Shown piece by piece: positions 6,072 through 60,887 of a DNA stretch of 64,000 nucleotides. Position 1 is the stretch's first letter. Each line of letters opens with the position of its first letter. The translations under genes and the position numbers were made by a program. The notes under the pieces were generated by a model that saw only the letters and a program-made list of their open reading frames with translations, was not told the DNA's origin and made no database searches. Location of the stretch: NCBI GenBank assembly GCA_002269645.1, contig NIVC01000390.1, positions 248,001 through 312,000 on the forward strand, read 5' to 3'. Source of the stretch: Macrostomum lignano. Taxonomy: Eukaryota.

Positions 6072-9000
6072 ATGGAGCCGCTGGATCGAGATGAATACGC
6101 CAGACGGTTTCGGGCCTCACGAAATCTGATCGTCACGGCGGCGCAGAACCGACAGCGCTACCTGCAGCAGATGGCTCGCTGCATCGACGACAGCCAGGTG
6201 GCCGTGGAACAGGCTAAGCGGAAGCACCCACGAGTGACTTTCACTCAAAGCGAGGAGGAGCTGGCCCAGGCGCGAACTCAGCTACTTAACCAGCTCCCTC
6301 TGTCCCTGATTGTATTCGGTCGAAGCAACACGGGGAAGTCGACGCTGCTGAATCAGATTCTGCGCTACTGGCCGGACCAGGACGGCGTGACACTGTTCCC
6401 AACTGCGGGCCACAACTGTTCAGCCAGGGTGGCTGTTGTCAAATACGGTCCATCCAACGAGATCCAACTTCTCAGCCTGCGTCCCAGTTCACCAATGGTG
6501 CTGGAGCAGAAGGCCTTTACGACCAGCGAGAGCATCCGAGACTTTATGGACCTCGAACATAGTCGGCGAGAAGTGGAGGAAGAGTTGTGGAAGCTGGTGC
6601 AGATTCAGCTTCCACAACCGCTGCTGCAAGGTAACCTTCAGGTCGTTGACAGTCCAGGAATGGGAGAGAATGAAGTCATGAACAAGGTGGTGAAGGAGTT
6701 TTTGTCGCGGCTAAAATCTGGCATAATTATCTACGTTGTGGACGGCATGGAAGGCTACAAGCCAAATCCGGTAAGAGTTTATCATGCTTGCATTGCTCAA
6801 ATACTCATATGAAATACTCCAAAATCGGGTGAACTTAAATATTAGTCAAGTAAGCGTCTATTAAGACGACCAATGAGCACAAGTAAAAATGAAAACCGGT
6901 TTGAATTCCCAAAAATATACACTTTTATCTACATAAATCGTCTATTTATCCGCTAGGACAAGGAAAACATCAAATTTCTGATGGAGCAATCTACTGCCCT
7001 GCAACGGCTGATCGTGGCGAATCGTATCGATTTTGACTTCGTCTCATGGTTTAACAACCAAGAATTAGATTATGACCTTGAAGAAGACCCGCTTGAAGAT
7101 GTGCTCGACGGTCTCAGGGAGGATATGGGATTCGACTACGCTGAAATTTGCGAGCAACACTCGACCAAGCAGCTTAACGCGGTAAGACAGAAAGTGAAAT
7201 ATGAACATCCAGACTACCTCACAGGTGACAGGAACGTGGAGGACTTGGTCATCGGAGTATCTGCTAAGTCGGTCAAAGATTTTATCACCAACCAGCAAAC
7301 GCTGACTCATGCTCCGTACGTGGATTCCTTCCTGCAACTGGAGAGCCGCATCGCCGCTTTGGTGTATGAGAACGGTCGTCATCATCTGCAGGATGCAGCG
7401 AGGATCGCTCAGAGGCATCTGATGCAGACTAAGACTCTATTGGCGAACTTCTATGGCGACCACTCTGAGAGGGGTCAGAAGATGATGGAGTTGCTAGAGA
7501 AAAGCATCGTGACTTTAAACGAGATTTTCCGGCAAATCTGCCTATCGCTGAACAGTGTGCTTGCATGCGACTCGCTCGACCTCGGCAACCAGAACAGCGA
7601 GCTGAACCGTCTCAAGACCCGCTTCGTGCGCGAGGACGTCCCGCCGGAACAGCAGGCCATTGACACGTCACTAATGATGCGCGAGAGCGAGGCAAGGTTC
7701 ATGGAGTCACTCATCAGAACTTCCGGGGGCAGCCGCGAAGCTAAGGTGGCTATTCGCCTGCTATGCGATTTCAAAGATACAGTTGTCAGCAGGATGCGCA
7801 CCATACTGATGTGGAACTTTAAGATGATATTTATGGTGGAAGCCAACAGACCATTGAGCAAGCTAGAATCAGATTGCAAGAAGCTCTTGGACAGCCTGAA
7901 AATGCAGTCGGCTCAATTGAGCAGCGGAAACGAATGCGAATACGTAATTGGGCTGGTAAGTTCTCAGATGCTTTCACCGAATCCGGCAGTGTTTGACCAG
8001 GTGTGCACGGAAAAGCTGACTGACTCAATGCGGCAGGCGCTTGGATCCGCCGTTCACCGAGACGAGTTCCGCCGCATCATCGATTCTCTAACGCCGCAGT
8101 TCAACCGGTCCGATGAGGAGCGCGATCGAGTGCTCACCTACTTTATGAACAACGTGGATCTGACGCAGCAGATTGCCAATGTCATTACCGAGTACAAGAA
8201 TCAAATAAAAACTCAGAAGGTAGTCGTAGAAAATCTGCTTTCAGCGCAACTTCAAAACATGCGGGAGCGAAAGACGCGGAGCCAGGAGGAGCTGGATGAC
8301 ATGCGATCGCACAACGAGAAAATGTCGGCCATGAGTTTCTACATCGATGCGCTGGTCACGGAGGCTAACTGGACGGCTGATTATGAAATCAGTGAGCAGC
8401 TTTTGGACTGTTAATTTACGAGTAGTCAATTGGCTAAACACCAGCTTTTAGCTTTCAATGGTGGAATGTAAATAAACACGGGAATCAACATCTATCAATG
8501 AGATGACTAGATAGTCTGTAGTATTTATGAATTTTTCTAGAGGGGTTGTTTAACGTCCTAAGAAACGACCTTAAATGAAGTACGTATATGGTAGCTTAAT
8601 TTGCATTTTAGCCGTCAAACTTGTATACTCGAATACTCATAAACCACGCAGGTCTGCGAGAATTCCAGGAACAACTTGCCAGCATGACGTCTTCGGTATC
8701 TCCGGAGCGACTGCAGCGTCGGCTAAAGCCAAGATTTGCCAGGTCGTGCGAACAGCACGGGGCCGGCGCTACCGCAGACCTGTTGCTGCACTACCGCCTG
8801 GTCAGGATGCAGCAGGACGATGCCAGGCGATTGGCTTCAGATGTGGCTCAAGTTGGGTTAGTGCCGATGCTTTTTAAGCTCTATGAATGGGTTTTAACAC
8901 TGCTTTGTTTAGTTATGAAATCAGCAGTCTGTTCTCTCAACTGCATTTGTTTTACGAGATAAGTTGGGGTGGTAGCCTAATGGTTAGACCGTCGGACTCA

Positions 9001-10308
9001 CAACTGCAAGGTCGGGGGTTCGATTCTCGACCCACTCGGAACAATTTGTGTCCTTCAGCCAGACACTTAAATATCTGCATTGCTTCAGTTCACCCAGCTG
9101 TAGTTCCACAGCTCTTCAGTTCACGAGCTGTAAAATGGGTGCCAGAATTAAGCTGGGGTAATTGGGGGTATGTAGGGCGACCCCCCAGTCCTTGGACCTT
9201 GGATTGAACAGCCGTACCCAGCCTTCAGATGCCCCGCGCAATAGCTGCGGCTGAGCTGTCAGTTGCTCGCCTGCCCATTGGGCAGGTGCAATCAATTATT
9301 ATTACTAAGTTGAAACATGACCCAGAATGTCTTTTGAGTCTGTTTGGCTCCTATTTCAAGGTTACGAGCGTAAAATCACTAAGGCTCTGGTTCCCAAAAG
9401 CAAGCGTAAAGTAGACGAGTAAATACGAGCATACTTGAGCAAAAAAGGTAAATTATACTTTTTTATTGAAACGATGCCTAGCATAGTAAAGGAGAAAAAA
9501 GTCTGTAAAATACGCCAAGCTTTGCTAGAATAGGCCCAGGGAAAACAGTATGCCTCTGAAATGCTCCACTCTGATCTACAGGAGTCGCCTGGCCGGGTCT
9601 GTACGCCTGAGCTGGCTCAGCCTGGCTGACAACTATCGCGCTCACATGGAGGAGCCTGAGGCCCGTTTGCTAATCGGCTTCGACGGCAATTACGTCAGCC
9701 TGGCTGAGCTCCCGCCCGGGCGCCTCACCGATGCCATCCGCCTTGTCCTACTACGGCGCCTCGTAGACTGTTGGGCCAGCCTGTCCAGCCTCGCTCACCG
9801 GCCGAGCGACTACCGGCCTTCCTGCGTCCTGCTGCGACGCCGGCATCCTGACGAAGCCGAGCAAATCCAAGACATTGACGGCCTGGCCAGCGACGAGGCG
9901 TTTGCGGACCCGACTCTGACGATCTCCTCGGAGGGCGATGCCGGGTCGCTGGCCGCCTGCGCTGCGTCGCTGTTCGTTCACGAGTGCCGCGACAAGGACA
10001 ACGATGCAGTTACCAATGCTGCCGGCTGGGACGCGAGGCAGGCCAGCGAACTCCAGCTGCTGACCGGGGATCGAGACCGCTACCTGGCCGGGCTGAGGCG
10101 CCGGCTTGTCCGAGACGGCCGGCCGGAGGGTCTCATCACCGGCGTCGTTCGCTGCGTTCGCGCCTGCCTCGAAGCCTCGAATTTAGATGCAGAATCGCTG
10201 AGCGATGGTGCCGACGAGAGAGAGCAGCTGGCAGCTTTGCGGATGAAGAAAATCCAGGAGGCGAGGGCTGAGTTACAGACGGCTGCTGGCGCCATTGAAA
10301 AGCAATGA
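6072..10308 (+). CDS. Four-exon gene (6072-6770, 6957-8391, 8652-8856, 9582-10308; 1021 aa): dynamin-like GTPase, helical region and degenerate kinase domain; DSTYK-like
   Basis: G1 GRSNTGKS, G3 DSPG, G4-like NRID. Donors GTAAGA 6771, GTGAGC 8392, GTTAGT 8857 and acceptors at 6956, 8651, 9581 give phases 0, 1, 2 and an open 3066-nt CDS. The C-terminus resembles the DSTYK kinase (KPRF, LTDAIRL, HRP, RDGRPEGL). Confidence 0.8.
8966..9306 (+). mobile_element. tRNA-derived CORE-type SINE (family B), intact copy in intron 3 of the GTPase gene
   Basis: A-box GGTAGCCTAATGG, B-box GGTTCGATTC, MIR/CORE-like TGTGTCCTT..AGACACTTAA..TTGCTTCAGTTCAC..CTGTAAAATGGG and an (ATT)n tail. A second copy is at 31955. 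Confidence 0.85.
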
Positions 10309-22100: not shown

Positions 22101-25100
22101 CGTGGGATTTTTCTGTTAGTTAGTTAGTGGATCGGTTTGTATCTGCTATGACCATTCCGCTGCCCCCCGAGCGGGCACACAATAAGGGCGAGAATCGCCC
22201 GACAAGCCTTAGGCCAATTTTCGGAATCCAACCCGGGGGCACTTTGCGCAAGAGTTATCTGTCAGCGATCTACGCTCGTACGTTGTCTCTGAGTTCTCCT
22301 CTGAGCAAGCCAAGTAAGTGAAACTGTCTTCTGTTCTTGATCGACGGGGAAAGTATTGATTTTTAGGATTAGTGCCAACTCCCATATTGTAACTTACAGC
22401 AATGTAACTTAGTTCTACCAGCGATCGAGTTCAGCTCGTTAGTCGCTTATCAGTCATTAAGAAGTTGCACTTCTATCCCAGACTGACGGGTTAAGAATCA
22501 GGCCAACTACCAGTTGCTTGAAATTGCTGAATCAGCTTACAATGTAATCTTGGCTTGGCCTTCCTTGTACTCGTCCTTCCCCGGTGATTAAACAGAGTTG
22601 AGTTGAAGCGCTCACTACTAGTAGCATAGGCGCCTTCCACTTGCAACATGGCACAGGCTCATGCCTTAATGAGGCCTCCGCGCCCCACCCCCAACCCCCC
22701 CCCCCCTGAACCAGGCAGTTCATGGGGTCAGTCAGCGGTCGCAATCAACGAGCAATTTCGTCGCATTCATTCGGCATCCCCAGCAGCTGCCCAGCGGCTC
22801 TCCCCACCTAACCCGAAGAAGCAGCTGTCGAAAGGCTGCAAAGCAAACAGTGCGCGCTTGCCGACGGATGGTAGAAGAAATCCTGGCCAGCCTCCCCTAG
22901 CTTAGTAAGGAGAGCTGCTGCAAAGTGTAAATTTGCCTCAAACCCCTTCCCGACCACCGAAGCGGGTGTCGAGCTTTACCAGCTTTGCGCAAAGACTGAG
23001 GGCCGGCGGACTTAGTTAAAACAAACTCTCTCTCTCTCTTGTCGAGTGCGTGCGAAAAATTAGCCGCCCACCCCCTGCTGCGCAAGCGATTTTAAAGCCC
23101 AATAATCCAAGTCGCCGCGCGTGAGCCACCTGGTGCGCATTCCCCCTGTGCCTCATAGTTATGCCTATTATTTTATGGCCCGAGCCTGACTTTGTAGCGG
23201 CTTTTTTAGGCTCATTATAAATTTCTTACCTACTTACGACTAGATGTGAGCGGGCGGTGGCCTTTGGTGGAAGGCTCCTTGACCCTGTGCAGGGTGTACA
23301 CAAATACATTTATACTGTGCCTTGGGTTGCCTCAGGGTGATTGCGCCAGCAAAACAGACCCGTTGTACAGCTACCAGAGTCTTCAGGTGCCCTGGTCTTT
23401 CGCTATTCTACATGTAGCTCTCTTTTCAAAATCCAGTCGCCAATAGTCATCAATAGGTGTTAATGTCCAGCTGAAGTTATTGTGTGTTCCAATTAGCCTC
23501 TGAAGCTAGAAATTCACTTGAATAGTCAAAAGCTCAGTGCAATGTGGGGACCAACTGTGTCAGGTTTTTACATTGAGAAGGCGCTGCCGGGACATGACAG
23601 AATGACGTAAACTGATGGAACATTAGCAAAATATTTGCTTAGATGAAACACGGCAGCGGATTGGTCGATTAGCGAAAGCAACTGGAAGAGATTTTTGCAA
23701 GACAGCCGATTCCAAGAATCACAAATGCAGGCCGTAGGCTCTATTTCGGCTTCATTCGATGCTTCATCTCTCGGCCATCGCGGGACGGGCGGCCCCGTCA
23801 GGACCGGGGGCTGAAGTCATTCTTACCTTGTACCGCCTGCCGCTCGGGTCCACGCAGTCCCGGCTGTCGCGACACACCGGACAGCAGTCGCCCTTCGGCT
23901 GGAAGTAATCCTTCTCGGCGCATTCCAGCACCGGACAGTTCTGGCGTCGGCACACAATGGTCCCGTGCTGCGGGAGGGGACAGACAGGGATAGGAGGCAG
24001 CGCCGCGTCAGGTTGGGAAAACTATACGGTCTAAATGGATCCTTGAGTGGCCCTCCGCGGGTGGTGGAGGGGGCCCGCTAATGGCCGGCCCTTGGCATCA
24101 TCAACAACATCAGGGGGGGGATAGCGGAGCGGGCGGAGACGGAATTCCAGACCAGATCGGAATCCCTTAAGTGGCTCCCCCATCTTTCCGCTTGTCCGGC
24201 CGCTGTGTCTCTCATGTTGGCAGCCGGCCACCGGGCCCGTGGACCCTCCTGCGGGTCCGGTGTTTACATTAGTAGCAGCATTTGCCACGCAGCCTCAAAT
24301 CCCCCCGCCGCCGCCGTCACCGGCCAGTGGTTAATTTTCGATGTAGCCGCATTTAGCTTATTTAGCTAAGGCTAAGAATAAAGCTATAATCAACAGTAAA
24401 CTCTCGAATATTTTTCAGGCGTTCAAGAGTATGCTCCAATTTCTTGAATCGTAAAATAAAAGTAAATTCGAAAAAGAAAATTGCATCAGTTCAAGCCGTT
24501 ACATTTTTAATGTTGCTGGTTTGACTGACCTTGAAACAACTAGTTTCGTAATTTTTGTTTAAAATTGTCGCTTGCTGCTCTTTTGTCTAGCTAGAGCACC
24601 TTCAATGGCTGAAGAGAAGCTGAAAGGGGCTGCACAAGGAGTGCTGAACAGGGAGTGCTGAACAGGGAGTGCTGAACAAGGAGTGCTGAACAGGGAGTGC
24701 TGCACAAGGAGTGCTGAACAGGGAGTGCTGCACAAGGAGTGCTGAACAGGGAGTGCTGAACAGGGAGTGCTGAACAGGGAGTGCTGAACAGGGAGTGCTG
24801 AACAGGGAGTGCTGCACAAGGAGTGCTGAACAGGGAGTGCTGCACAAGGAGTGCTGAACAGGGAGTGCTGAACAGGGAGTGCTGAACAGGGAGTGCTGAA
24901 CAGGGAGTGCTGAACAGGGAGTGCTGCACAAGGAGTGCTGAACAGGGAGTGCTGCACAAGGAGTGCTGAACAGGGAGTGCTACACAAGGAGTGCTGAACA
25001 GGGAGTGCTGCACAAGGAGTGCTGAACAGAGAGTGCTGAACAGGGAGTGCTGAACAGGGAGTGCTGAACAGAGAGTGCTGAACAGAGAGTGCTGAACAGG

Positions 25101-28100
25101 GAGTGCTGGACAGGGAGTGCTGAACAGGGAGTGCTGAACAGGGAGTGCTGAACAGGGAGTGCTGAACAGGGAGTGCTGGACAGGGAGTGCTGAACAGAGA
25201 GTGCTGAACAGGGAGTGCTGAACAGAGAGTGCTGAACAGAGAGTGCTGAACAGGGAGTGCTGGACAGGGAGTGCTGAACAGGGAGTGCTGAACAGGGAGT
25301 GCTGAACAGGGAGTGCTGGACAGGGAGTGCTGAACAGGGAGTGCTGAACAGGGAGTGCTGAACAGGGAGTGCTGGACAGGAGTCGCTGTAAAGAGATTTG
25401 AGTGCTGTACGGGGGGTGCATGGCCTGTTAACTTGTGTGGGCGACTCGTAATAAAACGATTCGCGCGATGCCGTCTCAGCGAAGATTATTAAAGCATAGA
25501 AAATTTTTATATAGCAGCTTCTTGTCAGTATTGTGTGCTTTGAGAAGGCTAGGCCTCAGCTAAGCTACACATCACTGGAGCACACAATAAAAGGCTTTGT
25601 AGCAATAAATTTGCAGCATAAACCAGCATAAGCCTCAACAGTTTACAACCGCGCCGCCTTGCAAAAGAGAAAGCGAAAAAGCGCAGCAGCAGATGAAAGA
25701 GACTAAAAAGCGATTAAACAGACCCTCATTAAAACCAAAACATGGGAGGCTGTTGAAACTGGTGTGGACATATTCATATTAAACAGTCCTATCAACCACT
25801 TGAGCATTTTTGAGACAACAACCTGCCTGTCTATCCGGTGAAGAGGCTCTGAGAACGCGTCGCTAAGTCGCTTAGATTCTCGGGTCAATCTCAGGGGTCA
25901 AGAGATCCATTTTGACTCACCCGGCACGAGCAGTCGGTGCATCGGTCAACACTCCAAGCCGTAGTGTTTGAGTAGGTTTGGCCCTGGAACAGGCACTGCT
26001 GCTCGGCGGGCTTCGCTCGAGCCTCGGCGCCTGAAACGGCTGAAAACGGACAGAATGGGACCGAAGTGGCCTCAGTTGGCAGTGATAGAAATAGCGATGG
26101 GTTAAAGTTATTAAAACCACTGGCAAGCGGTGGGGTTAAATCAACCGATTGTGCCAGGAAAGGGTCGAATATTTTGGGATAGGATTAGTCGGAGCGGGAT
26201 TCGGCCATTTTCACCGATAATTTAGGTAGGACAAGGGCTAGGCCAACTCCATCCGGTCCTTCGGCCCCCATAACTTCACAATAGCAATCATTTATCTACG
26301 GAAACGAGTATGTAGCTTTTGAGCTATTTTTACTTGAAGAAACATTTTGAACTTTCGACTCTTTAACGGTTTTTTCTCGTTCCTGCCATCCCGGACAACT
26401 TTGAACGCTTGTGGAATGGCTACCTGAAAAGTAATATTGAAAAAAACTTTTTCCTGATTCTAGTTTGCTATATGATCCAAACCTGATGCACACCTAACAC
26501 CTGGTGGATTAATGATTAGTAGAACCTTCACCTGGCTCACTAGCTTGTTTTCTGTGAGTTCTCTAGGCAGTCCTAAGGGATTGCTAGACTGACGCATGGC
26601 CTTGGATACCTGTGGAGTATCAGGTGATTCTGGCTACGGTTCCGAGGGATGGGGCTACCTACTGACCTATAACAGAGTATACGGCCAGTCCAGCGAGCAG
26701 TTCATGAACCTTTGCCTGTGCACTTGGGTTCGGGGCCCGCTTTAGCCGTGCCTCCCCGATGCATCCGCACTAAATCCGAGCAAAACTAAAGTTATCAACT
26801 GTACTACTCTCACCTGAGCACGCGAGACAATGCCCGCTGTGGGTCTGCTCAGCTGGCGGACAGTTCACCAGCTGGCAGGCGTCCTTGAAGCAGCTCAGCA
26901 TGCCGCCCTCGCAGCGACAGACAACCGACTGGTCTTCGAATGGCCGAACGTTCTGATCAGGACTGACCAGCATGTTCTTCACAGTGCAGCCGAAGCAGCT
27001 GAAACGGTTGATGATGGATCGGAGTCGCTTTCAAGAGCAGCTTCAGGCAACAGGAAATTCCTGCAAACTATTCGCTAATTCAAAATTCATTCCCGAGGAC
27101 GAAGGCCCGGCCATTATTTTTGATGATCTTAAAAACAGCTCTGTCCCTCTCTCTGCCCCGGTCCCTTCCCGGCATCACAGGAGAAAATGCAAAATGCAAA
27201 GGTGTTGATAAAGCTCAGGTGGAGGCTTCAGCAGTTCCGCTTTAATCATCGGAGCTCCCGAGGAAAAGCTCCCTTCCCGAGGAGATGAGGCCGGCAGGAA
27301 AGAAACGCGAGTATGTCGTAATTGACAGCCAGCCCATGCAGCCGGGCTCTGGGGGACTGCTGTATTCCTATTTCAACTCCCTTAAGACCTTCCGCCTGCT
27401 TCGTTAAAATATTTTAGCAAAAAAGCCTCTTGCATGGACTCAAAGAGGCCTCTGGATTTTACTGACTGGCCAACCGAAGCATTTATGTTTTAGATCAAAG
27501 GAATGCGCTCTTAGATTAAATATCTACGCATTTAGACTAGAGATTTACACATTTAGACTAGAGATCTACGCATTTAGACAAGAGATCTACACATTTAGAC
27601 TAGAGATCTACGCATTTAGACAAGAGATCTACACATTTAGACTAGAGCTCTACGCATTTAGACTAGAGCTCTACGCATTTAGACTAGAGATCTACGCATT
27701 TAGACTAGAGCTCTACAAATTTAGACTAGAGATCTACGCATTTAGACTAGAGCTCTACAAATTTAGACTAGAGATCTACGCATTTAGACTAGAGATCTAC
27801 CCATTTAGACTAGAGATCTACAAATTTAGACTAGAGATCTACGATTTAGACAAGAGATCTACACATTCACGCCCTAAAAATCTACACATTTAGACTAGAG
27901 ATCTGCACCTTTAGACTAGAGATATATGCATTTAGACTAGAAATCTACACATTAAGACTAGAAATCTAAGCATTCAGACTAGAGATCTACGCATTTAGAC
28001 GAGAGACCTACACCCAGCAGAACTGCAGAAAGCGCCCTAATCAGACATCTGTGCATGAAGTAACTACTTATCAAATAAAACACCATAGCACCCATTCGCG

Positions 28101-32642: not shown

Positions 32643-34146
32643 ATGGCTTCTAACCGAAGTAACAAACCGGCTGTGGATGACACAGTGCCTCCGGCCTCGG
32701 CTGGGGCCGTGGACTCCTCGGCCATACCACCTGCTACCATCGGGGACGCCTCGGCGAGACCCGTGGAGCCAACTCTGAGCGGTGCCTCCGAGAAGACACC
32801 TGCTACTCCAGCTGCTAAGCAACGCAGCACCACCTCTGGAGCTGCCCGCCGTCGACTTAACAAGGCGAGGCGGGCCAAGGAGGGCGGAAGCCAAACCGGT
32901 GCCAGGGGCCAACGGCCCGCGGCAGCGGAAGCTTCCCAGTCTGGGGCGGTGGCGGAAGAGGGCCTCGAGCCCACGGAAGCCCCTGCCCAGGATAGGGAGG
33001 CCGATGCAGCCGGGAGGGTGGACAGCCCACCTGAAGAAAGCTCCACTGACCCCCGGCCTCCTACGCTGATGCGGCAAAGAGGCAACCGGCGGTTGTCATC
33101 CTGGGAAAGGACGCGCGCCTGTCTCCCGATCAGCTGAAGCAGGTGAGAAGTGCCGTTGATGGCCTCCTGTGGAAGCTTACTCTGAAGGGCACGCCTCTGA
33201 ACATTCATTCGAATGCGACGAGGGACTCGTGCCTTCTCATTTGGCCCAGTGATGCTGACTCGGGTCGGCGGCTCCTTGAGCTGCTGCCCGAGCAGAGCTG
33301 GGACCTCAACCTAGCCTTCTGCAGAGAGGACGAGCGCCCCCGGACCAAGAGGCATCGAATCTGGGTCCCGGCCAGGAGCGTTGTTACCTCTGCTGACGAG
33401 CTCCGGAAAGGACTGCTAGCAGTCAACCGAGAGCTTCCCGCCGCGGGCTTTGTGGTGCATGACACCCTTAAGCGCACCGACGGCACTGGCTTCACAGCCA
33501 TCCTGGGGCTGTCGGACGCCTGGATGAGGCGTTATCCACACGGCGCCTTTGGAAGCTGCGCATCCGCTCCTACGAGGCCGACCCTCCCCGTGGCAGTGAG
33601 CAGGGCGGGCGGGATGCGGAGGCGGCCGGGGCCGAGGCGCAAGCCTCTGCTCAGACTGCCAAAGCAAACCGCCCTGCCCGGCAGCACGGCCGCGCGGGCA
33701 AAGCTGAGCGCGCTGCTGAGGGCGGAGGCGACCGACGCCCGGCGCGCAGCACCAAGCGGCGCGGCCTGTACCAGCGTGCAGCTGAGGCAGTCCGTACCGC
33801 CAAAATCGCCCAGCTGAGGCGAGAGGTCGCCGGGACGCCTAGGCGCACCAGTTCGTCCAGGGAGGGTGGGGACGTCCCAGCTGGGCCCAACCCCTCGGGG
33901 CAGGGCCGACTGGAGACGGACCCGCCTGCCCAGGCGGCTGGCTGCTCCAGGGCATTGGGCCAATCTGAGGCGGAGGACCCCATGGATGGTGGGCAAAGGG
34001 CGGCGAACGCTGCCTACTGCCTTCCAGCCAATCGGGGGCCTTTTGCTGAAGAAGAGCCCATGGACACCGGCGACCCCGACCCGAAGCCGGTGAGCGCCGA
34101 GGAGGAGGAGGAACTCCTGGCGGCTGCAACATCCGATCTGCAATGA
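32643..34146 (+). CDS. LINE ORF1 (gag-like), broken by at least two frameshifts (about 33060 and 33540)
   Basis: MASNRSNK start, SGAARRRLNKARR basic motif, SYADAAK and RHRIWVP..GLLAVNREL as in LOA-type ORF1; ends at TGA 34144-34146. Confidence 0.7.
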
Positions 34147-37100
34147 TGCCAGCGACTACCTGGTGTCTGCAGATCAACACCCAGCACTGCGTGGCGGCGT
34201 CGGTCAATCTGATGCGCACGGCAGAGCAACAGCTTCCGGGCCTGGTCTTCGTACAGGAGCCCTGGATGACTAAAGGTAAGCCAAATAATGTGCCATCTGG
34301 CTACCACTGTTTTTGCATGGCGGGCTCTCAGCCTCGCCCAAGATCTCTGGTCTTTGCTGCGAAAGCTTTTGAGGCATGGATGAGACCTGATCTCTCGTCT
34401 GGGGACATCTGTGTTGTTCAAATCAATAACCTCATTCCCAATAAACCTGTGCTGGTAGCATCTGCCTATTCCCCGGGCGATGCCCCAGTTGTCTGCGACG
34501 CGCTAGTCAACCTTATTGACTATGCTGCGTCCCATCGGTTCGAGCTGCTCATTGCAGGGGATGTGAACGCACACCACCTGCATTGGGGCAGCAAAAACAT
34601 CAATAGCAGAGGCGAGGAGCTGCTGGCCTATGTCAGCAGCACTAACCTCAATTTCTGTAACGTGGGCAATGCACCAACGTTCAATAATGGGCGGTGGGCC
34701 GAAGTCATCGACACCACCATCGCCTCACCCGGACTGCTTTCCGCAGTTACGGGCTGGCGAGTGTGGGACGAGGACTCGCTCTCGGACCACCGCTTTATCC
34801 GCTTTTGCATTGGGCCGACCAAGCAAAAGCCTAAGGTCACTTGGAGTCGGAACGTCAGGAACACCGATTGGGCCGCCTTTGGCTCGAAGCTGAGCCGCGG
34901 CCTTCGGGATCTTGACCCCCCAGTGACCTCTCTGACTGCCAGGTGGTGGATGATCTCGCCTCCTCCCTGGGCGGGCGATCACCACTGCCTTTGAAGCAGC
35001 CTGCCCTCTAAAGCCTATAAAGGCAAGAAATCTGCTCCCTGGTGGAACCCAGAGCTCGGGGCCCTTCGGCGCCGAGCCAGGACCCTCCAAAGGCGAGCGC
35101 TCAAAACCAAAGACCCATCTGACAGAGAGGCCTATACCCGTGCGATCCACGAGTTTAAGGGCCAAGTCAGAAGGGCCAAGATGGCCAAGTGGCGCCAATA
35201 CTGCGAAGGGCTTGAGGGCTCTCGCCCCGTAGCCCGCGTGGTTAAGGCACTCACGAATGACCGTTTTTCTAAACTCTCTGTTGTAAAGAGACCTGACGGC
35301 TCGGTCACAGGGAGCTCTGAAGAGACTCTGGAGCTAATGCTCAACAGTTTCTTCCCTAAATCTCCGACTCAGCAGGGCCCGCCTGACCACACAGTGGGAG
35401 GGCAAGGCCTAGCAAAGTCTATAATCACCAAAGACCGCATTATTAGAGCGGCAAGGTCCTTTAACCCGTTCAAGGCGCCTGGGCCCGACGGCATCTACCC
35501 AGCGTTCTTGCACGAGGCGGCGAAAAACCACCGCTTTCTGGACCTCCTCTGTCGTCTCCTCCGAGCTTGTGTGGAACTGGGCTATGTACCAGTTGCGTGG
35601 AGAGAGGCCCGGGTGGTCTTTATCCCCAAGCCTGGAAAGAGCGATCACCAATCGGTGAAGGCCTTCAGGCCTATCAGCCTCACTTCTTTCTGCCTCAAGC
35701 TCCTCGAGAGACTGGTGCTCTGGCGCCTACTTTCAGTCGAGCTGAAGCGCTTCCCACTCTCGCAGAACCAGGACGCCTTCCGCGCGGGCAGGTCTACCGA
35801 GAGTGCCCTCCATGTCATTGTTGACTTCCTGGAGAGGGCCGTTCTTGGCAGCGGCTTTGCCCTCTCGCTTTTTCTGGACATTGAGGGGGCCTTCGACAAC
35901 GTCATCTTCGAGGCCTTTTGCAGAGCCCTGGAATCCAGGGCCACGCACCCTCACCTTGTCCGGTGGATCATGTTCATGATCCGGAACCGCACTGTTGTGG
36001 CCCACCTGAACGGCAGCTCTCTTTCGGCGCCTGTCCAAAAAGGGGGCCCCCAGGGCGGAGTTCTCACCCCCGTTCTCTGGAACATGGTCATGGATGAGCT
36101 GCTTTGCAGTGATCTCCACGACCCCATTCTCAAGGTGGGCTATGCCGATGACGTGACCGCGATCTGCGCGGGCCCCTCGGTTGACACCATCAGAGATCTT
36201 CTGCAGGGCTTTCTGGGACGAGCGGAGCGTTGGGCAAACCAATGTGGTCTTAGACTCTCAGAGTCGAAGACCACAGCGGTCATGTTTACCAACAAACTGC
36301 TCTGGACCATTAAGCCCCTCACCCTCTATGGAAAGAACATTTCCATGGAGAAGCAGGTCCGCTGCCTGGGCCTCACTCTGGACCACAGGCTCAACTGGAC
36401 TCCGCACACTCAAACTAAAGCCAAAAAAGCCCTGGCTGTCCTGGCTCAGATCAGGCGCGCCGTGGGCACCACCTGGGGGCTCACCCCCAGGAAGCTGTGG
36501 TGGATTTACACTGCAATCATCCGCCCCTCGATCAGTTACGCCAGCCTCGTGTGGGCTAGCGGTCTGGGCGTCAAGAGTAACCTCGACGCTCTCTACAAAA
36601 TCCAGGGCAGAGCCTGCCGCATGACTATGGGCGCTCCACCCTCTACTCCTTTTGAAGGCATGAATGCCTTCCTCTGCACCCCTCCTCTGGATATTTATAT
36701 CAAAGGAGAGGCGGCGAAGAGCACCCGGCGTCTTCTGGATGCTGGGGTGGCCTTCAAGAAAGTGCGGGCCTTTAAGAAGCGGTCGCTTATCCCGCACTCT
36801 GACCTCTGCCTCAAGGCTCTAGAAGAATGTGGCGGGCTCAACATCCTCTCGGACTCGATCCCAGCCACCCTTCTCCTGAGCCAAAGGTATAAGGTCACTA
36901 TTCAGCCTCGACATGAGGCGAGTGACAGCTGGAGCGATTCTGAAGTCCACTGTTACACTGACGGCTCTATGAAGCATGGTCTTTCAGGCTTCGGAGCGTG
37001 CGTCTTCTTCAAGGGAGAAGTGGCGTGGAGCTACTCCCAGCACACTGGGCTCAACTCCAGTGTTTTTCAGAGCGAGGTGCTTGCCATCAGCTCCTGCGCG

Positions 37101-37842
37101 GCAGAACTGCGCCGAAGGCAGCTTAGCGGTCGGAAGCTTATTTTTCACTCTGACAGCCAAGCAGCCCTTCGGGCCCTCTGCCGCTGCACCACCAGCTCCA
37201 GGTCTGTCCTGGACTGCAACACCCAGCTCAACGGGCTTGCGCTAGGCAACCAGGTAGAGCTCAGATGGATCCCGGGCCACGCCGGTTTCCTCGGCAACGA
37301 GCGCGCCGACCTGCTGGCCAAGGCTGGCTCCGCCGGCGCGCTGCTGGGGCCGGGCCCGGGGCCCCCATCCCCGCCTCGGTGATCAACTCCCGCGTTAAGC
37401 GCTGGGCTGACTCCGAGCATCTCCGCAGGTGGCACGACACCCGGAATTGTAGGCAATCCCGGGCGGCCGTCCCTGCCCCTCCCCTCTCCTGCGTAGAGCC
37501 CTCCTCAGGCTCAACCGCAGAGACCTCAGAGCAGTTAGCATGGCCCTCTCCGGGCATGGCTGCTTCTCTCGCCACCGCTTCCTTCAGGGCCAGGTACCCG
37601 AGGAGCGGTGCCCCTTCTGCCGCTCAGGCAGTGAAAACGCCGAGAATTTTATCTGCCACTGCCCGGTTTTCACCAGGGCCAGGCTCACTCACCTCGAGCC
37701 AAACCCGGTTCTCTCCAACGTTTGCAGGCCCGAGAGCATCCCGTTGCTCGCCCGGTACCTCAGGGACACGGGACGAGCCGATTTCTTCCCCACTGTCGGT
37801 GAGGAGGATCGCGCTGCAGGCGAGACCGACGGGTCCCCCTGA
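34143..37842 (+). CDS. LINE ORF2: AP endonuclease, reverse transcriptase, RNase H and C-terminal Cys/His motif; several single-base frameshifts
   Basis: QINTQHC, VQEPW, GDVNAH, DSLSDH (APE); KAPGPDG, FRPISL, FLDIEGAFD, GPQGGVL, YADD (RT); YTDGS, QSEVLAI, HSDSQAAL, WIPGHAG..GNERAD (RNase H); CPFC..ENFICHC. Confidence 0.9.
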
Positions 37843-46319: not shown

Positions 46320-49300
46320 ATGCGACAAGAACAGAGGCTGCTAGCGGCCCTGCTCACGGTAGCCGTTCTCCTGCTGTTGTACTTCGGCTTGAGTAGGCGA
46401 TCAACTCGAACGCCAGTTGTGTCGGAGGGGCTCAAAAAGTCAAAGCCGGTGGCGCCGGGCAGTCAGCGAGACGAATCTAGCGTGCTCATCAGCACGGAGC
46501 TGTACACCATGCGCCAGGTGAATGCTTCGATTAAGCACAATGACGTACCACTGCGCTTAAGCCTAGTGGCCGTGGAACCTAGAAAGCACATCCAAGCCAA
46601 GGTGCCCTCGGTGCTGCTGCTGCACGGACACGAACAGTCGGCCATGATGTGGGAGAAGATCGGCACCCTGCAGGTGCTGGGCGACACGGGGCACAAGGCC
46701 TACGCTATTGATCTTCCTGGTGAGAGTTGAACCAGTGTCAGTAATTTCTTACTCAATGCTGTCTTCGGCAGTATCAGAAAGCGACGGTGAATGTCCAATG
46801 GTGCCACTTCCTCGGAAATGAGGAATTCAATCACTAATCTTTGTCGCTTTAATAATTGGGGATTTATGTTACGAGTATGTTTAGGGTTAGGTTCAGCTTT
46901 GTAGCAGTCAATTTTTTAGTGATCGAATAATGGCAGTTGGGGCAGTCAAATGTCTTGGATTTCAATCTTTACTCAACCACCACCTTTCCAGTCCCTTAAT
47001 AATATTTCATAAGCTTGCATAAATAAACATTGGCACGAGGGCTGCGGGCACCCTGGCGCAAAGCCTTCGGCGACATCGTCCCACAACCAGATGAGACCGG
47101 AAAATTTGACCGGCACAATTTGACCGGGATATTTGGGACCAACAATCTGATCGCCCTATTTTTCTGCCGCGAGAGTGATTATTCTTTCAAACTGTGAATA
47201 CGCTAGCTGTTATTATGTTTTTCGAGACTTTTTGAGGAAGTGACATTAAAAACGCATACTGACTACTATACTATACTCTAAGAGTTTTTTGAGCAAGATC
47301 TTCTGTTCTATCAGAAGATTTTCTGGTAGAAATCCCTTAGATTCCATCCCTTAGAATTATACTGTAGACTTTACAAATAGTACAGATTGTACAAAGTATA
47401 AATAGACTGTAAAGTTTTAATTTTGAAGTGCCGTAAATGGTGCGGTAAAAGTATAATTTTGTACCCTTTCTGAGCATCGCATCTTTTTTCCTGCTTTGGT
47501 TCCGGGGCAAGGGAAAAATGTAATGAATCAGCCAGAGGTCTTTAATGCATAAAAAATCCAATGAATATGAATGAAAATTACAGTCAAAATAAGTAAAACT
47601 GTCTGTGAAATTGTCGGCGGTGAAATTAAGGCGGTCAGGCTGGAAATGTTTGAGTAGGTGGGGTCTGATCTGGCTTTATATGCCAATCTTCTAAATAAAC
47701 ATTGGTTTGCCAAGCATTGCCTGGCCGTTGAGGATATCCCACGCATACTACTACAGCAACCAAATTACTAGTAACGTGTAAATTTCAAATTTATTTTTTA
47801 ATGAATTTAACCGACTATCGACTTATTTTCAGGTAAAACTAAATTAGCTGATTAGGCTGAAATTTTGAGATAGAAAAATCTATAAAAACGGATTAGTCAT
47901 TCCTTGAACTTCCCAATGGTGTATTGGACAGGATTATAAGGTAAAATTTTGAAAATAATAGACGCGAAAATCTAAACTAAACTGAATATATTATAGCCAA
48001 TATAGCTAATGTAGAGTAGCCAATATAGCCAATGTAGAGTAGCCAATATAGCCAATGTCAATAGCCAATATAGCCAATGTCAATAGCCAATATAGCCAAT
48101 GTAGAGTAGCCAATATAGCCAATGTCAATAGCCAATATAGCCAATGTCAATAGCCAATATAGCCTATGTCAATAGCCAATATAGCCAATGTAGAGTAGCC
48201 AATATAGCCAATGTAGAGTAGCCAATATAGCCAATGTCAATAGCCAATATAGCCAATGTAGAGTAGCCAATATAGCCAATGTAGAGTAGCCAATATAGCC
48301 AATGTCAATAGCCAATATAGCCAATGTCAATAGCCAATATAGCCAATGTCAATAGCCAATATAGCCAATGTCAATAGCCAATGTAGCCAATGTCAATAGC
48401 CAATATAGCCAATGTCAATAGCCAATGTAGCCAATGTCAATAGCCAATATAGCCAATGTCAATAGCCAATGTAGCCAATGTCAATAGCCAATGTAGCCAA
48501 TGTCAATAGCCAATGTAGCCAATGTCAATAGCCAATATAGCCAATGTCAATAGCCAATATAGCCAATGTCAATAGCCAATATAGCCAATGTCAATAGCCA
48601 ATATAGCCAATGTCAATAGCCAATGTAGCCAATGTCAATAGCCAATATAGCCAATGTCAATAGCCAATGTAGCCAATGTCAATAGCCAATATAGCCAATG
48701 TCAATAGCCAATATAGCCAATGTCAATAGCCAATGTAGCCAATGTCAATAGCCAATATAGCCAATGTCAATAGCCAATGTAGCCAATGTCAATAGCCAAT
48801 GTAGCCAATGTCAATAGCCAATATAGCCAATGTCAATAGCCAATATAGCCAATGTCAATAGCCAATATAGCCAATGTCAATAGCCAATATAGCCAATGTC
48901 AATAGCCAATATAGCCAATGTCAATAGCCAATATAGCCAATGTCAATAGCCAATATAGCCAATGTCAATAGCCAATATAGCCAATGTAGAGTAGCCAATA
49001 TAGCCAATGTAGAGTAGCCACTGGCTGCACCAAAATACGGTTATAAACCATCGTTCTCTAAAAATCGAGGCACCAACCTTATTCGAATTTTTTACTACAC
49101 ATCGCAGAAGCAAAGCATAAGAAAATTGAATCAATCGATTTTAAAAAGACAATCCATCGGTTTCCGGTCTCACCTGCTAACCGCGAGCCAGGCTTAATTA
49201 GGGAAGTCAATTAGCCGCAGACATTCCCGGGCGCTTCCGCCCCCCTGGTGCATGATGGGCATTCAGGAACGCGGCATTCTCTGTCAGAGCTGACTGACGA

Positions 49301-50867
49301 TTTATGAAAATGAATTGGCCAAGATCTGGTCTGGTGCTGCCACCCACCCACCCACCAACAGAATTTCACGGAACCCCCCCCCACCAGGTATGGATTTCAA
49401 ATTATCACCTCGGCCCTGGGCAAATTTCTGCTCGTTATTCAGCTGGAAAATCCTTTGCTTTTAGCTTGCGTGCCTGTCTACCCGTTCAACCGGTGCCAAG
49501 CCTGCTTTTGTTTAGCAAAACGATTGCTGCAGCTATTGCTTTGAGCACAGTAAAGTAAATGGATTATTATATGAGAAGAAGACGAATAGAAAAGCAATAC
49601 CTATCAAATATGGAGAAAATATGATTCTTAGTTCACTCAGATCACTGATGGAACGCATAGCAACTGTAGTCTCGCTATATACTGCAAGGCGGTGCTCTTG
49701 GATGCGGTTAGCACTGATGTTGCCAATCCAGCTGTATTTATCTAAGGGATTTTTTAATAAAGCTCCCCACTGTTAAATCCCAAACCGCACACCCTCGCTC
49801 TGCTCAAACTAGGCTCAGGCCACACCCGGCTGTTGGGGAAGCTGGCGCCCACTGATTTCATCCAAGCCGTAGTGGATTACTTGGACCTCGACCGGCCGCT
49901 TCTGGTGGCCCCGTCAACCTCCGGGGTCTTCGCCTTCGCCTACGCGCTGGAGGACCCGCACGGTATGCAAGCGAGGCTGTCCGGCTTCATCGGACTGTCG
50001 CCGTCGCACGCGCTGGCCTACGCGCAGGAGGACTTCGCGCACTTCAAGGTGATGGCGGCTTGTTTTGAAATCGTTTTCTTCCGATGCCCGACTCTTGATG
50101 ATTCCCAATGTCCCATGATTCGCAATTTCCCATGATCCCCAGTGTCCCATGATTCCCAGTGTCCCATGATCCTCAATGTCCTATGATCCCCAATGTCCCA
50201 TGATTCCCAGTGTCCCATGATCCTCAATGTCCCATGATCCCCAATGTCCCATGATTCCCAATGTCCCACGATTCCCAATGTCCCATGATTCCCAATGTCC
50301 CACGATTCCCAATGTCCCATGATCCCCAATGACCCATGATTCCCAATGTCCCGTGATCCCAATGTCCCATGATCCCCAATGTCTTATGATCCCCAATGTC
50401 CCATGATCACCAATGCTCCATGATCCCCAATGTCCCATGATCTCCAATGTCGGATGATTCGCAGTGTCGGATGATCCCCAATGTCCCATGATTCCCAGTG
50501 TCCCAAATTCCAAATTCTCAATGTCCCGCTGTTCTCAATGTCCCGCTGTTCTCAATGTCCCGCTGTTCTCAATGTCCCGCTGTTCTCAATGTCCCGCTGT
50601 TCTCAATGTCCCGCTGTTCTCAATGTCCCGCTGCTCTAAATGTCCAATGTTTCTGTTCTAACCCCCTTCGCCATCCAGAAAGTGTACACGGTGCTCTTGT
50701 ACGGCACGGAGAATGACCTGCCAGGCGAGGAAGCCTACAAGCGCTTCCGTCTGATCCCTTCCGCCCGGGTGATCCCAGTTGATTCGGCCAGCCACCTGCA
50801 CTATGTGGAGCGGCCGGATATTGTTAATGACATCATTATTGACGCGCTGAAGGCTCTGGAGGACTGA
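46320..50867 (+). CDS. ABHD14: ABHD14-family alpha/beta hydrolase with N-terminal membrane anchor (ABHD14A-like); exons 46320-46719, 49813-50048, 50679-50867; 274 aa
   Basis: VLLLHG..WEKIGTLQVL..AIDLPG, nucleophile motif APSTSG, LLYGTEND (Asp) and ASHLHY (His); phases 1 and 0 are consistent; anchor LLAALLTVAVLLLLYFGL. Confidence 0.88.
47030..47110 (-). mobile_element. SINE family A 3' fragment
   Basis: Reverse strand GGTTGTGGGACGATGTCGCCGAAGGCTTTGCGCCAGGGTGCCCGCAGCCCC matches the tails at 11345-11390 and 20604-20655. Confidence 0.5.
47993..49020. repeat. 22-bp minisatellite (TAGCCAATATAGCCAATGTCAA)n in ABHD14 intron 1
   Basis: About 46 units built from a TAGCCAAT sub-repeat; a GTAGAG variant occurs near the ends. 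Confidence 0.97.
50100..50645. repeat. Two adjacent related 17-bp arrays, (CCCAATGTCCCATGATT)n then (CTCAATGTCCCGCTGTT)n, filling ABHD14 intron 2
   Basis: Period 17 in both; shared CAATGTCCC core; switch at about 50500-50513. Confidence 0.93.
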
Positions 50868-50957
50868 TTTGTTTTAGTTGGACAATATTTTCCTCTCGCA
50901 TCGTCATTTTTCTCTTAGGAAATTTAAAGTAATTTAAATTTAAAGTAAATATAACAG

Positions 50958-52845
50958 AGAGTGAGACAGTGAGGCAATGAGACGGGCAGACAGTGACACA
51001 GTGAGACAATGAGACGGGCAGACAGTGACACAGTGAGACAATGAGACGGGCAGACAGTGACACAGTGAGACAATGAGACGGGCAGACAGTGACACAGTGA
51101 GACAATGAGACGGGCAGACAGTGACACAGTGAGACAATGAGACGGGCAGACAGTGACACAGTGAGACAATGAGACGGGCAGACAGTGACACAGTGAGGCA
51201 ATGAGACGGGCAGACAGTGACACAGTGAGACAATGAGACGGGCAGACAGTGACACAGTGAGACAATGAGACGGGCAGACAGTGACAAAGTGAGACAATGA
51301 GACGGGCAGACAGTGACACAGTGAGACAATGAGACGGGCAGACAGTGACACAGTGAGACAATGAGACGGGCAGACAGTGACACAGTGAGGCAATGAGACG
51401 GGCAGACAGTGACACAGTGAGGCAATGAGACGGGCAGACAGTGACACAGTGAGACAATGAGACGGGCAGACAGTGACACAGTGAGGCAATGAGACGGGCA
51501 GACAGTGACACAGTGAGACAATGAGACGGGCAGACAGTGAGACAGGCAGACAGAGTGAGACAGGCAGACAGTGAGACAGGCAGACAGTGAGACAGGCAGA
51601 CAGTGAGACAGGCAGACAGTGAGACAGGCAGACAGTGAGACAGGCAGACAGAAAGACAGGCAGACAGAGAGACAGGCAGACAGAAAGACAGGCAGACAGA
51701 GAGACAGGCAGACAGAGAGACGGACAGACAGTGAGACAGGCAGACAGTGAGACAGGCAGACAGTGAGACAGGCAGACAGTGAGATAGGCAGACAGAGTGA
51801 GACAGGCAGACAATGAGACAGGCAGACAGTGAGACGGGCAGACAGTGACACAGTGAGGCAATGAGACGGGCAGACAGTGAGACAGGCAGACAGAGTGAGA
51901 CAGGCAGACAGTGAGACAGGCAGACAGTGAGACAGGCAGACAGTGAGACAGGCAGACAGTGAGACAGGCAGACAGTGAGACAGGCAGACAGTGAGACAGG
52001 CAGACAGTGAGACAGGCAGACAGTGAGACAGGCAGACAGTGAGACAGGCAGACAGTGAGACAGGCAGAAAGTGAGACAGGCAGACAGAGTGAGACAGGCA
52101 GACAATGAGACAGGCAGACAGTGAGACAGGCAGACAGTGAGACAGGCAGACAGTGAGACAGGCAGACAGTGAGACAGGCAGACAGTGAGACAGGCAGACA
52201 TTGAGACAGGCAGACAGTGAGACAGGCAGACAGTGAGACAGGCAGACAATGAGACAGGCAGACAGTGAGACAGGCAGACAGTGAGACAGGCAGACAGAGA
52301 GACAGGCAGACAGAGAGACAGGCAGACAGTGAGACAGGCAGACAGTGAGACAGGCAGACAGTGAGACAGGCAGACAGTGAGACAGGCAGACAGTGAGACA
52401 GGCAGACAGTGAGACAGGCAGACAGTGAGACAGGCAGACAGAGAGACAGGCAGACAGTGAGACAGGCAGACAGTGAGACAGGCAGACAGTGAGACAGGCA
52501 GACAGTGAGACAGGCAGACAGTGAGACAGGCAGACAGTGAGACAGGCAGACAGTGAGACAGGCAGACAGTGAGACAGGCAGACAGTGAGACAGGCAGACA
52601 GTGAGACAGGCAGACAGTGAGACAGGCAGACAGTGAGACAGGCAGACAGTGAGACAGGCAGACAGTGAGACAGGCAGACAGTGAGACAGGCAGACAGTGA
52701 GACAGGCAGACAGTGAGACAGGCAGACAGTGAGACAGGCAGACAGTGAGACAGGCAGACAGTGAGACAGGCAGACAGTGAGACAGGCAGACAGAAAGACA
52801 GGCAGACAGAGAGACAGGCAGACAGAGAGACGGACAGACAGTGAG
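50958..52845. repeat. Compound satellite: a 32-bp unit grading into the 16-bp unit (GTGAGACAGGCAGACA)n
   Basis: Period 32 at 51001 and 51033; 16-mer from about 51540; source of the 300-677 aa repetitive ORFs. Confidence 0.97.
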
Positions 52846-53225: not shown

Positions 53226-53730
53226 GGCAGCTCAGCGATAAACGCATCTGACACTCGCCCCACAGGTCCCTGGTTCGATTCCGTCCTCGATCGCAGTCAT
53301 TTTTGCACTAAAATTAATCCAAGGTTTGTTCTGCGATTCCCACCCATGAGAGCCAACCCCCCAAGGCACAGAGAGAGTGTACATGCCTGAGAGAGTGTAC
53401 ATGCCTGAGAGAGTGTACATGCCTGAGAGAGTGTACATGCCTGAGAGAGTGTACATGCCTGAGAGAGTGTACATGCCTGAGAGAGTGTACATGCCTGAGA
53501 GAGTGTACATGCCTGAGAGAGTGTACATGCCTGAGAGAGTGTACATGCCTGAGAGAGTGTACATGCCTGAGAGAGTGTACATGCCTGAGAGAGTGTACAT
53601 GCCTGAGAGAGTGTACATGCCTGAGAGAGTGCACATGCCTGAGAGAGTGTACATGCCTGAGAGAGTGTACATGCCTGACGATTAGAAAGTCAAGGACGCT
53701 GTACACCCAGTGTGAGCGTGTGCGTGCCTA
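53226..53730 (+). mobile_element. SINE family A copy with an internal 18-bp minisatellite expansion
   Basis: Head CAGCTCAGCGATAAACGC..GGTTCGATTCC, body GCGATTCCCACCCATGAGAGCC; the SINE resumes after the array with GACGATTAGAAAGTC. Confidence 0.8.
53371..53676. repeat. 18-bp minisatellite (GAGAGAGTGTACATGCCT) x17
   Basis: 306 bp, 17 units, one variant unit. Confidence 0.97.
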
Positions 53731-57111: not shown

Positions 57112-57170
57112 CTGTGACAGACACGGTGCGGAGTACGCTTGAACTTTGCTCATCACTTTTAATCGCCTCC

Positions 57171-60700: not shown

Positions 60701-60887
60701 TTTCTGGGCTTTGTCGCAAAAATGATAGCGAGAACACTACTAATTGAGCTCTATTCCCGTTCCTGAAAATTATCGGATTAGCGTTAAGCTCCGATGCTCT
60801 CTTCCTTCTAAGGAATTCTAGCAAAAGCACTTGAAACACTTTTTCTGGGATTAGAGTTGATTGGGTGTGCCTTGGAAAAATGAGGAG

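Follow-up and report, generated by a model that had tools for sequence, protein, structure and literature searches.

A 64,000-nucleotide stretch of the Macrostomum lignano genome (GenBank assembly GCA_002269645.1, contig NIVC01000390.1, positions 248,001 to 312,000; hereafter the window, with positions counted from its first letter) carries on its plus strand, at 6072-10308, a four-exon gene, Mlig020050.g1, whose product we take to be a soluble 1021-residue GTPase of the dynamin superfamily, of the class of the bacterial dynamin-like protein BDLP and the mitofusins, and most likely drawn from the lineage of the animal protein DSTYK. In DSTYK-like proteins an N-terminal Dynamin_N domain and a C-terminal protein kinase domain lie in one chain. 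On balance, sequence comparison leads us to read the product of Mlig020050.g1 as a divergent relative from this lineage that would have retained its GTPase and whose kinase would be dead.

The coding sequence is assembled from four open reading frame (ORF) pieces (6072-6812, 6981-8414, 8621-8962 and 9550-10308), joined at junctions 6770|6957, 8391|8652 and 8856|9582, which keep the pieces in phase and give 3066 nt, or 1021 codons plus a stop. All three introns run from GT to AG (Table 1), and the start codon position is shared with the paralog P0002 described below. The product is identical over 1021/1021 residues to GenBank PAA84057.1 (BOX15_Mlig020050g1, 'hypothetical protein'), and its UniProt entry, A0A1I8J8J9, is named 'Dynamin_N domain-containing protein'. 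The GenBank annotation of the M. lignano assembly was built from an RNA-seq-based, genome-guided transcriptome (PMC5730564), and the junctions are therefore supported by transcripts; those at 8391-8652 and 8856-9582 are both used in two deposited RNA-seq-derived models. Were the gene model an artefact, with a transcript ending at 8414 and with 8652-10308 as part of another gene, the in-frame stop that a retained intron 2 exposes would account for the end of the transcript. However, the deposited models contain the junctions, and in P0002 the homologous tail sits in one protein, whose alignment runs from Met1 through the whole tail and so rules out 8652-10308 as a separate gene; the artefact is hardly credible. 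That Mlig020050.g1 is one gene encoding one protein, as the original prediction had proposed by splicing the separate ORFs in phase, is as good as certain. A literature search found the gene ID Mlig020050 in no paper.

The GTPase domain spans residues 60-345. Pfam recognises Dynamin_N at residues 80-226, with an E-value of 2e-11 and a score (44.7 bits) that exceeds the cut-off of 27, and the nearest solved structure by sequence is that of Nostoc BDLP (PDB 2j68, E=2.6e-8), with IniA next. Reading the G motifs in a 25-sequence family alignment, we found the canonical G1, G3 and G4 motifs that the original prediction had listed, and a G5 motif as well (Table 1). The protein almost certainly has a dynamin-type G domain with its motifs intact. 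Mlig020050.g1 has Ser at switch-I position 117, which is occupied by Thr in P0002 and in each of the 23 aligned DSTYK-like proteins; because this Thr is otherwise invariant, full GTPase competence is not assured, and by its motifs the domain looks competent save for Ser117. Downstream of it, residues 352-705 are almost entirely helix by DSSP of an AlphaFold2 (AF2) model (predicted local distance difference test, pLDDT, about 30-50), and no Pfam helical-domain match, Dynamin-like_hel_bact included, was found after the G domain.

Macrostomum holds further copies of this protein. The paralog from locus Mlig033244 (P0002, 987 aa) is 35-38% identical to Mlig020050.g1 and aligns with it end to end, tail included, with identities of 45% in the G domain, 36% in the stalk and 41% over the C-lobe-like residues 821-980, and of 29% in the tail start encoded by exon 3. 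Since the paralogs agree better in the C-lobe-like part than in the stalk, the tail is, by this comparison, still under constraint and not freely decaying. A second copy of the gene, Mlig020050g2 (P0001, contig NIVC01004419.1), has the identical three junctions; its deposited 840-aa model ends early, after 'ELPPG', because the contig has 1-bp deletions matching window positions 9718, 9867 and 9904. These three deletions all fall in exon 4, and hence in the tail, with none in exons 1-3. Intron 3 of the copy also departs from the window: one base is deleted at 9014, and indels and substitutions cluster at 9282-9303. The exon 4 deletions are either PacBio homopolymer errors or the marks of a damaged duplicate that is losing its tail.

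With a profile of the two paralogs, we searched 1.84 billion representative proteins exhaustively using HMMER. Only Macrostomum proteins fell below E 1e-30, and the next matches were proteins of ~880-960 aa, aligned via the G domain at E 7e-19 and weaker. Nine of the ten best named matches from outside Macrostomum were invertebrate DSTYK or DSTYK-like proteins and the tenth was an uncharacterised Dynamin_N + Pkinase protein; no vertebrate DSTYK was present among the 150 matches listed. The top full-length ones (P0004-P0008 and P0011), and the other ~880-960-aa proteins that we checked, are Dynamin_N + Pkinase relatives, with Dynamin_N at the N terminus and Pkinase or PK_Tyr_Ser-Thr at roughly residues 650-920; most are named DSTYK or DSTYK-like, and a few nemertean ones (Tubulanus, Lineus) 'uncharacterized'. 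The kinship with DSTYK that had been proposed was in this respect upheld, as the nearest relatives outside Macrostomum carry that annotation and that architecture. With invertebrate DSTYK-like proteins such as those of Lingula (XP_013414082.1), Nematostella (XP_032222785.1), Saccoglossus (XP_006822239.1) and Tubulanus (XP_074648888.1), Mlig020050.g1 shares the N-terminal Dynamin_N domain, the flavour of the G motifs (GxxNxGKSxL, P..CT/SAR, DSPGxxEN, N/T-K/R-x-D) and a collinear layout of GTPase, long and predominantly helical (in Mlig020050.g1, as predicted) middle or stalk, and ~290-residue C-terminal domain, with matching domain order and overall length (~900-1000 aa). Descent of Mlig020050.g1 from the DSTYK lineage is, in our judgement, probable.

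The kinase domain of these relatives is graded in its integrity, from fully intact to degenerate. Tubulanus P0011 keeps all kinase motifs (GKGAQG, AVK, HRDIKSSN, DFG, APE); Nematostella P0006 and Ptychodera P0008 have no Pfam kinase match, and the activation segment is lost in a block of hemichordate DSTYK-like paralogs. Judged by sequence, kinase decay is common in the DSTYK-like family, with degenerate kinases in Nematostella and in several Ptychodera, Glandiceps and Tubulanus paralogs as in the flatworm protein, and the combination of an intact GTPase and a degenerate kinase is therefore not unique to the flatworm. The suggestion that the locus might represent an undescribed system consequently failed, given this recurrence in Nematostella, hemichordates and nemerteans and a protein that is already deposited. 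On one Saccoglossus contig (296,890 bp) and one Ptychodera contig (50.6 Mb) there are several DSTYK-like paralogs each, with near-consecutive accession numbers, some with intact and some with degenerate kinases, a pattern that points to tandem expansion of these genes in hemichordates, the kinase having decayed more than once.

The tail of Mlig020050.g1 (residues 712-1021) is a ~300-residue Arg/Ala-rich domain at the position of the kinase. Alignment of the tail with the family kinase block by hhalign placed its best match at tail positions 108-153 (SLAELPPGRLTDAIRLVLLRRLVDCWASLSSLAHRPSDYRPSCVLL) on kinase columns 104-149, which hold alphaE and the catalytic loop, with a score of 24.0 (P=0.012); 150 column shuffles gave a mean of 13.2 (sd 2.25) and a maximum of 20.2. 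Three disjoint subsets of the family, with intact, intermediate and degenerate kinases, found their best match at the same spot with scores of 20-22, and a profile built from 33 kinases outside the family, of bacterial and eukaryotic origin and unrelated, aligned DYRPSCVLL with DLKPxNILL at the same coordinate with a score of 24.6. Of the negative-control profiles, that of the family G domain scored 13 and that of the family stalk 18, compared with 20-24 for the kinases, and with all four kinase profiles the match lies on the zero diagonal, that is, in the expected register. MAFFT, run unguided, aligned the whole tail collinearly with the kinase domain, with L820 and C975 falling in columns that do not vary in the family. 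The spacing from beta5 through alphaE and the catalytic loop to the DFG position, measured between motifs picked after the fact, is 21/28/20 residues in the tail and 20-21/26-28/17-20 in real members. The order of elements in an AF2 model of exon 4 (two short strands followed by a long helix, another strand, a gap and four helices) is compatible with a kinase C-lobe but weighs little at the low confidence of the model. The profile-profile signal of kinase ancestry is weak but reproducible (P about 0.01), and we lean, with modest confidence, towards a decayed kinase domain.

The original prediction had arrived at a kinase tail by another route, from short strings said to follow the DSTYK kinase subdomains in order. 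These strings exist (KPRF at residue 737, ARLLI at 807, LTDAIRL at 828, HRP at 852, DIDG at 877 and RDGRPEGL at 957), but their resemblance did not exceed chance by Pfam, HMM or Smith-Waterman comparison. The prediction was correct that the Gly-loop and the beta3 (VAIK) lysine are missing, as neither paralog has them. Its reading of HRD as HRP fared worse: the ungapped hhalign and MAFFT alignment puts D856 on the HRD aspartate, so that the loop is better read as PSD-Y-R-P-S-C, whereas the HRP register needs a two-residue gap. On this alignment D856, R858 and C861 fall on the HRD-Asp, Lys and Asn positions, so the Asp is kept, Lys has become Arg and Asn has become Cys, while P0002 keeps the Asn; the APE region is degenerate. 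The further proposal that DFG has become DIDG holds as regards spacing, but DIDG is not conserved in the paralog. With the Gly-loop, the beta3 Lys, the catalytic-loop Lys and Asn and a conserved DFG lost, the tail is not a conventional kinase, and as far as its motifs can tell it is without the residues for phosphotransfer.

A number of results weigh against this reading of the protein, Ser117 among them. A hidden Markov model (HMM) of 23 DSTYK-like proteins gave 170 bits over residues 25-702, ending exactly at the kinase start, and we withdrew an interpretation of this alignment as full-length DSTYK homology with a recognisable stalk after a control with a stalk-only HMM. The latter scored Mlig020050.g1 at 6.1 bits (E 0.09, 264 sequences) and non-training members at 50-227 bits; the 170-bit score therefore comes from the G domain, and because the DSTYK-specific stalk signature is absent, strict membership of the DSTYK family fails. 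A G-domain HMM trained without Macrostomum gave 132 bits, which falls among miscellaneous dynamin-like proteins, core DSTYK-like proteins scoring 220-320 bits. In a neighbour-joining tree of 73 G domains, the Macrostomum pair was basal to the DSTYK-like clade and sister to a long-branched Lingula protein, but over 100 bootstraps the sister group was unstable (DSTYK core 37, core plus others 30, other dynamin-like proteins 25). As for the tail, neither paralog has a Pfam match there at E<=10, no PDB sequence matches it at E<=10, the family kinase HMM does not match Mlig020050.g1, and a tail HMM found no kinase regions among 264 local sequences. Smith-Waterman comparison of both tails with 16 kinase domains, with shuffles, gave z about 0, and the four motif pairs quoted in the original prediction are therefore not evidence alone. 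The generic-kinase score of 24.6 was reached by 1/100 shuffles, one negative-control profile came as high as 18, and hhalign probabilities for the kinase match are just 1-5%. Word-index searches gave nothing to deepen the alignments for structure prediction: the tail alignment drew zero matches, missing even P0002, and the 25-sequence family alignment drew mostly generic kinases and no DSTYKs. The AF2 models, built on alignments of 3-4 sequences, have pLDDT values of 47.9 (exon 4) and 34.6 (full length), and Foldseek found no PDB match below E=0.6, an outcome of the shallow alignments and not of a contrary fold; DSSP of the low-confidence full-length model makes the part at the N-lobe position (residues 712-806) mostly helical, not beta. 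Finally, the protein has no transmembrane or obvious membrane-binding element.

Most of these observations would suit an independent GTPase of the BDLP/mitofusin class that acquired a lineage-specific C-terminal helical domain, in which case 'DYRPSCVLL' and the spacing would be coincidental: the stalk HMM does not recognise the protein, the GTPase score lies among non-DSTYK proteins, its place in the tree shifts, HMMER, Pfam and pairwise comparison give no kinase signal, and residues 712-806 are modelled as helices. We nevertheless consider such an origin rather unlikely, since the top full-length matches among 1.84 billion representatives are DSTYK-like, four kinase profiles agree on one segment in the expected register, the protein matches the DSTYK family in architecture and in the length of its tail, and undoubted family members with decayed kinases have been documented. 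The tail shows compositional drift (5 Lys vs 37 Arg in 310 residues, in the most GC-rich exon), a drift that would by itself erase Lys-containing kinase motifs. Compared with invertebrate DSTYK-like proteins, the flatworm protein differs in its undetectable stalk signature, its switch-I Ser, its Arg/Ala-rich and Lys-poor tail, and a tail far more decayed than that of any aligned member, as it draws no match from the family kinase HMM, for which those members served as training set. Taken together, the weak stalk score, the GTPase score and the unstable tree make Mlig020050.g1 a highly divergent relative from the DSTYK lineage and not a demonstrable family member. In the same tree a second clade of proteins with Dynamin_N and a strong Pkinase match (~1000-1100 aa; P0053, P0076, P0085 and P0035, none of them in the window) adjoins the DSTYK-like clade and is separate from it, with bacterial-type dynamin-like proteins further out.

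Two other explanations were weighed. Were the tail still an active, atypical kinase or an ATP-binding domain, the aspartate at the HRD position and the catalytic-loop Asn kept by the paralog would be accounted for; yet both paralogs are without the beta3 Lys and the Gly-loop, the catalytic loop has exchanged Lys for Arg and Asn for Cys, the DFG region is not conserved between the paralogs, the APE region is degenerate and there are only 5 Lys in 310 residues, all of which makes residual activity very improbable. An immune or defence effector in the manner of Mx, GBP or IRG GTPases, with the tail as sensor, is improbable as well. The points in its favour are circumstantial only: Saccoglossus and Ptychodera each have several DSTYK-like paralogs on one contig, and mammalian DSTYK acts on STING at late endosomes (PMC11933320). 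Against it, just one paralog locus is present in the data, no immune genes were seen near the locus, and NCBIfam and PADLOC return P-loop noise only. The defence role and the pseudokinase sensor put forward in the original prediction thus found no supporting evidence, and we return to a GTPase-retaining, kinase-dead relative from the DSTYK lineage as the favoured reading.

Comparison with better-known proteins helps to place the product of Mlig020050.g1. For human DSTYK (Q6XUX3) we used a provisional 929-aa sequence in place of the database entry and checked it against HMMs of real invertebrate sequences; it scored 244 bits with the kinase, 95 bits with the stalk and 37 bits with the G-domain HMM, and its P-loop and G3 motif presumably read GQDCNVKC and VVAPCQG. 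The human protein in this provisional form and the flatworm protein have the same three-part layout, with candidates for alphaE, the catalytic loop and alphaH at near-constant offsets, but differ in what would be reciprocal decay, the human one combining a strong kinase with degenerate G motifs and the flatworm one an intact GTPase with no kinase match. The claim of an activity inverted relative to vertebrates is borne out by the scores (G domain 37 and kinase 244 bits in human; G domain 132 bits and no kinase match in the flatworm), to the extent that a provisional sequence can carry it. Mlig020050.g1 shares with BDLP the PxxxC[TS]A switch-I region and DSPG, and its NRxD form of G4 resembles the mitofusin motif, which we take to be NRWD. 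In contrast to BDLP and mitofusins, it has neither a Dynamin-like_hel_bact stalk match nor a paddle, and it carries the extra ~300-residue C-terminal domain; a membrane anchor of the mitofusin/atlastin type is absent, as the maximum Kyte-Doolittle 19-residue window of 1.14 indicates no transmembrane segment. ROCO proteins (LRRK1/2), members of which with dead kinases are known, also join a G domain and a kinase or kinase-like domain in one chain, but this is an analogy only, since their Roc-COR G domain is Ras-like, not dynamin-type, and the architecture is unrelated.

By analogy with other dynamin-like proteins, the G domains of Mlig020050.g1 would dimerise in a GTP-dependent manner and the stalk would rearrange upon dimerisation, so that the protein might act on endomembranes without a phosphotransfer output, the tail serving as a structural or interaction module. 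Such a GTP-driven endomembrane role without kinase output is a tentative proposal, to which we give somewhat less than an even chance.

Table 1. Coordinates of the parts of Mlig020050.g1 in the window (res, residues; GC3, GC content at third codon positions; SINE, short interspersed nuclear element)
Feature	Position	Strand	Description
Exon 1	6072..6770	+	res 1-233; N-terminal helix and first half of GTPase; ATG at 6072
G1/P-loop GRSNTGKS	6318..6341	+	res 83-90; G83, G88, K89 and S90 invariant in 25 family sequences
Switch I/G2 'NCSAR'	6414..6428	+	res 115-119; Ser117 replaces Thr
G3 DSPG	6648..6659	+	res 193-196; E199 (invariant in the family) and N200 (nearly so) follow
Intron 1	6771..6956	+	gtaaga...gctag, phase 0; identical junction in deposited models P0001/P0259
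Exon 2	6957..8391	+	res 234-711; remaining GTPase (G4, G5) and ~365-residue middle/stalk region, predicted helical
G4 NRID	7020..7031	+	res 255-258; family form N/T/S-K-x-D
G5 SAK	7260..7268	+	res 335-337
Intron 2	8392..8651	+	gtgagc...cgcag, phase 1; unspliced ORF stops at 8412-8414
Exon 3	8652..8856	+	res 712-780; tail start at kinase N-lobe position, without Gly-loop or beta3 lysine
Intron 3	8857..9581	+	gttagt...ctacag, phase 2; holds tRNA-like SINE-type element at ~8965-9036
Exon 4	9582..10308	+	res 780-1021 and stop; C-lobe-like part of tail and C-terminal helix; Arg/Ala-rich, GC3 0.74
Segment 'RLTDAIRLVLLRRLVDCWASLSSLAHRPSDYRPSCVLL'	9721..9834	+	res 827-864; sole stretch with reproducible kinase profile match (alphaE and catalytic loop)
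'DIDG'	9871..9882	+	res 877-880; DFG position by spacing; without conservation in paralog P0002
'RDGRPEGL...RAC'	10111..10167	+	res 957-975; candidate alphaH-I equivalent; C975 in invariant family column (kinase 'CW' Cys)

The tRNA-like element in intron 3 (8965-9036, plus strand; GGTGGTAGCCTAATGGTTAGACC...GGTTCGATTCTCGACC) has apparent A- and B-box-like sequences and is probably a tRNA-derived SINE. It is present as a single copy in the window; ARAGORN found no tRNA there, its fold was no better than that of shuffles (z = -0.8), and an Rfam scan of it gave a single sub-threshold match that is surely spurious. Elsewhere in the window, a GC-rich block at 32-38 kb (0.58-0.64 compared with about 0.47 elsewhere) contains a non-LTR (long terminal repeat) retrotransposon at 34143-37379 (plus strand), in which an ORF with an Exo_endo_phos endonuclease precedes one of 733 aa that encodes RVT_1 and RNase H. 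On the minus strand, an uninterrupted 855-aa ORF at 13988-16555 matches the ANF_receptor/periplasmic-binding-protein ligand-binding domain (E=4.6e-23) and probably belongs to a receptor gene as one of its exons, and an ORF at 24591-25418 has a match to the DAN domain of the BMP-antagonist family (E=3.9e-11). Tandem arrays of short period lie densely at 48000-49010, 50098-50645, 50955-52845, 53371-53678, 57167-57710 and 60884-61398, with periods of 22, 17, 16, 18, 5 and 28 bp, respectively; the 16-bp unit, CAGACAGTGAGACAGG, occurs in about 118 copies. These arrays account for the strong GC and AT skew there and for spurious ORFs of 666-677 aa at 50.8-52.9 kb.

The locus is an ordinary gene, present in GenBank as a 'hypothetical protein', and its value is comparative. 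DSTYK is a human disease gene, involved in urinary-tract malformations and in the spastic paraplegia SPG23, and has lately been linked to STING signalling. The accessible literature is silent on its N-terminal two-thirds: our search found no paper that describes the DSTYK N terminus as a dynamin-type GTPase and none that states a decay of opposite halves, reviews go no further than the 'dusty' kinase domain (PMC10492769, PMC9573974), and a 2025 study in which mammalian DSTYK, active as a kinase in human, phosphorylates STING at late endosomes makes no mention of the N-terminal region or GTP (PMC11933320). The DSTYK family may go back to an ancient fusion, in animals, that joined a dynamin-type GTPase to a kinase, parallel to ROCO/LRRK, and of which different lineages killed opposite halves, a proposal for which we judge the evidence evenly balanced. 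Under this proposal, and with the same even confidence, vertebrates would have retained the kinase at the cost of the G motifs; in Macrostomum, Nematostella and many hemichordate and nemertean paralogs the GTPase would have been retained and the kinase lost; and some invertebrate proteins, in Tubulanus, Branchiostoma and Saccoglossus, would have kept both halves. If this is true, the flatworm protein would be the extreme GTPase-only end-member of the DSTYK family, and in human DSTYK the two-thirds outside the kinase would represent a dynamin-like scaffold that is dead; this could account for the localisation of the human protein to late endosomes. The bona fide dynamin-type G domains of invertebrate members, together with natural 'GTPase-only' versions, the most extreme of them in M. 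lignano, an animal with working RNAi and transgenesis, would make an ancestral GTPase function of the DSTYK N terminus testable.

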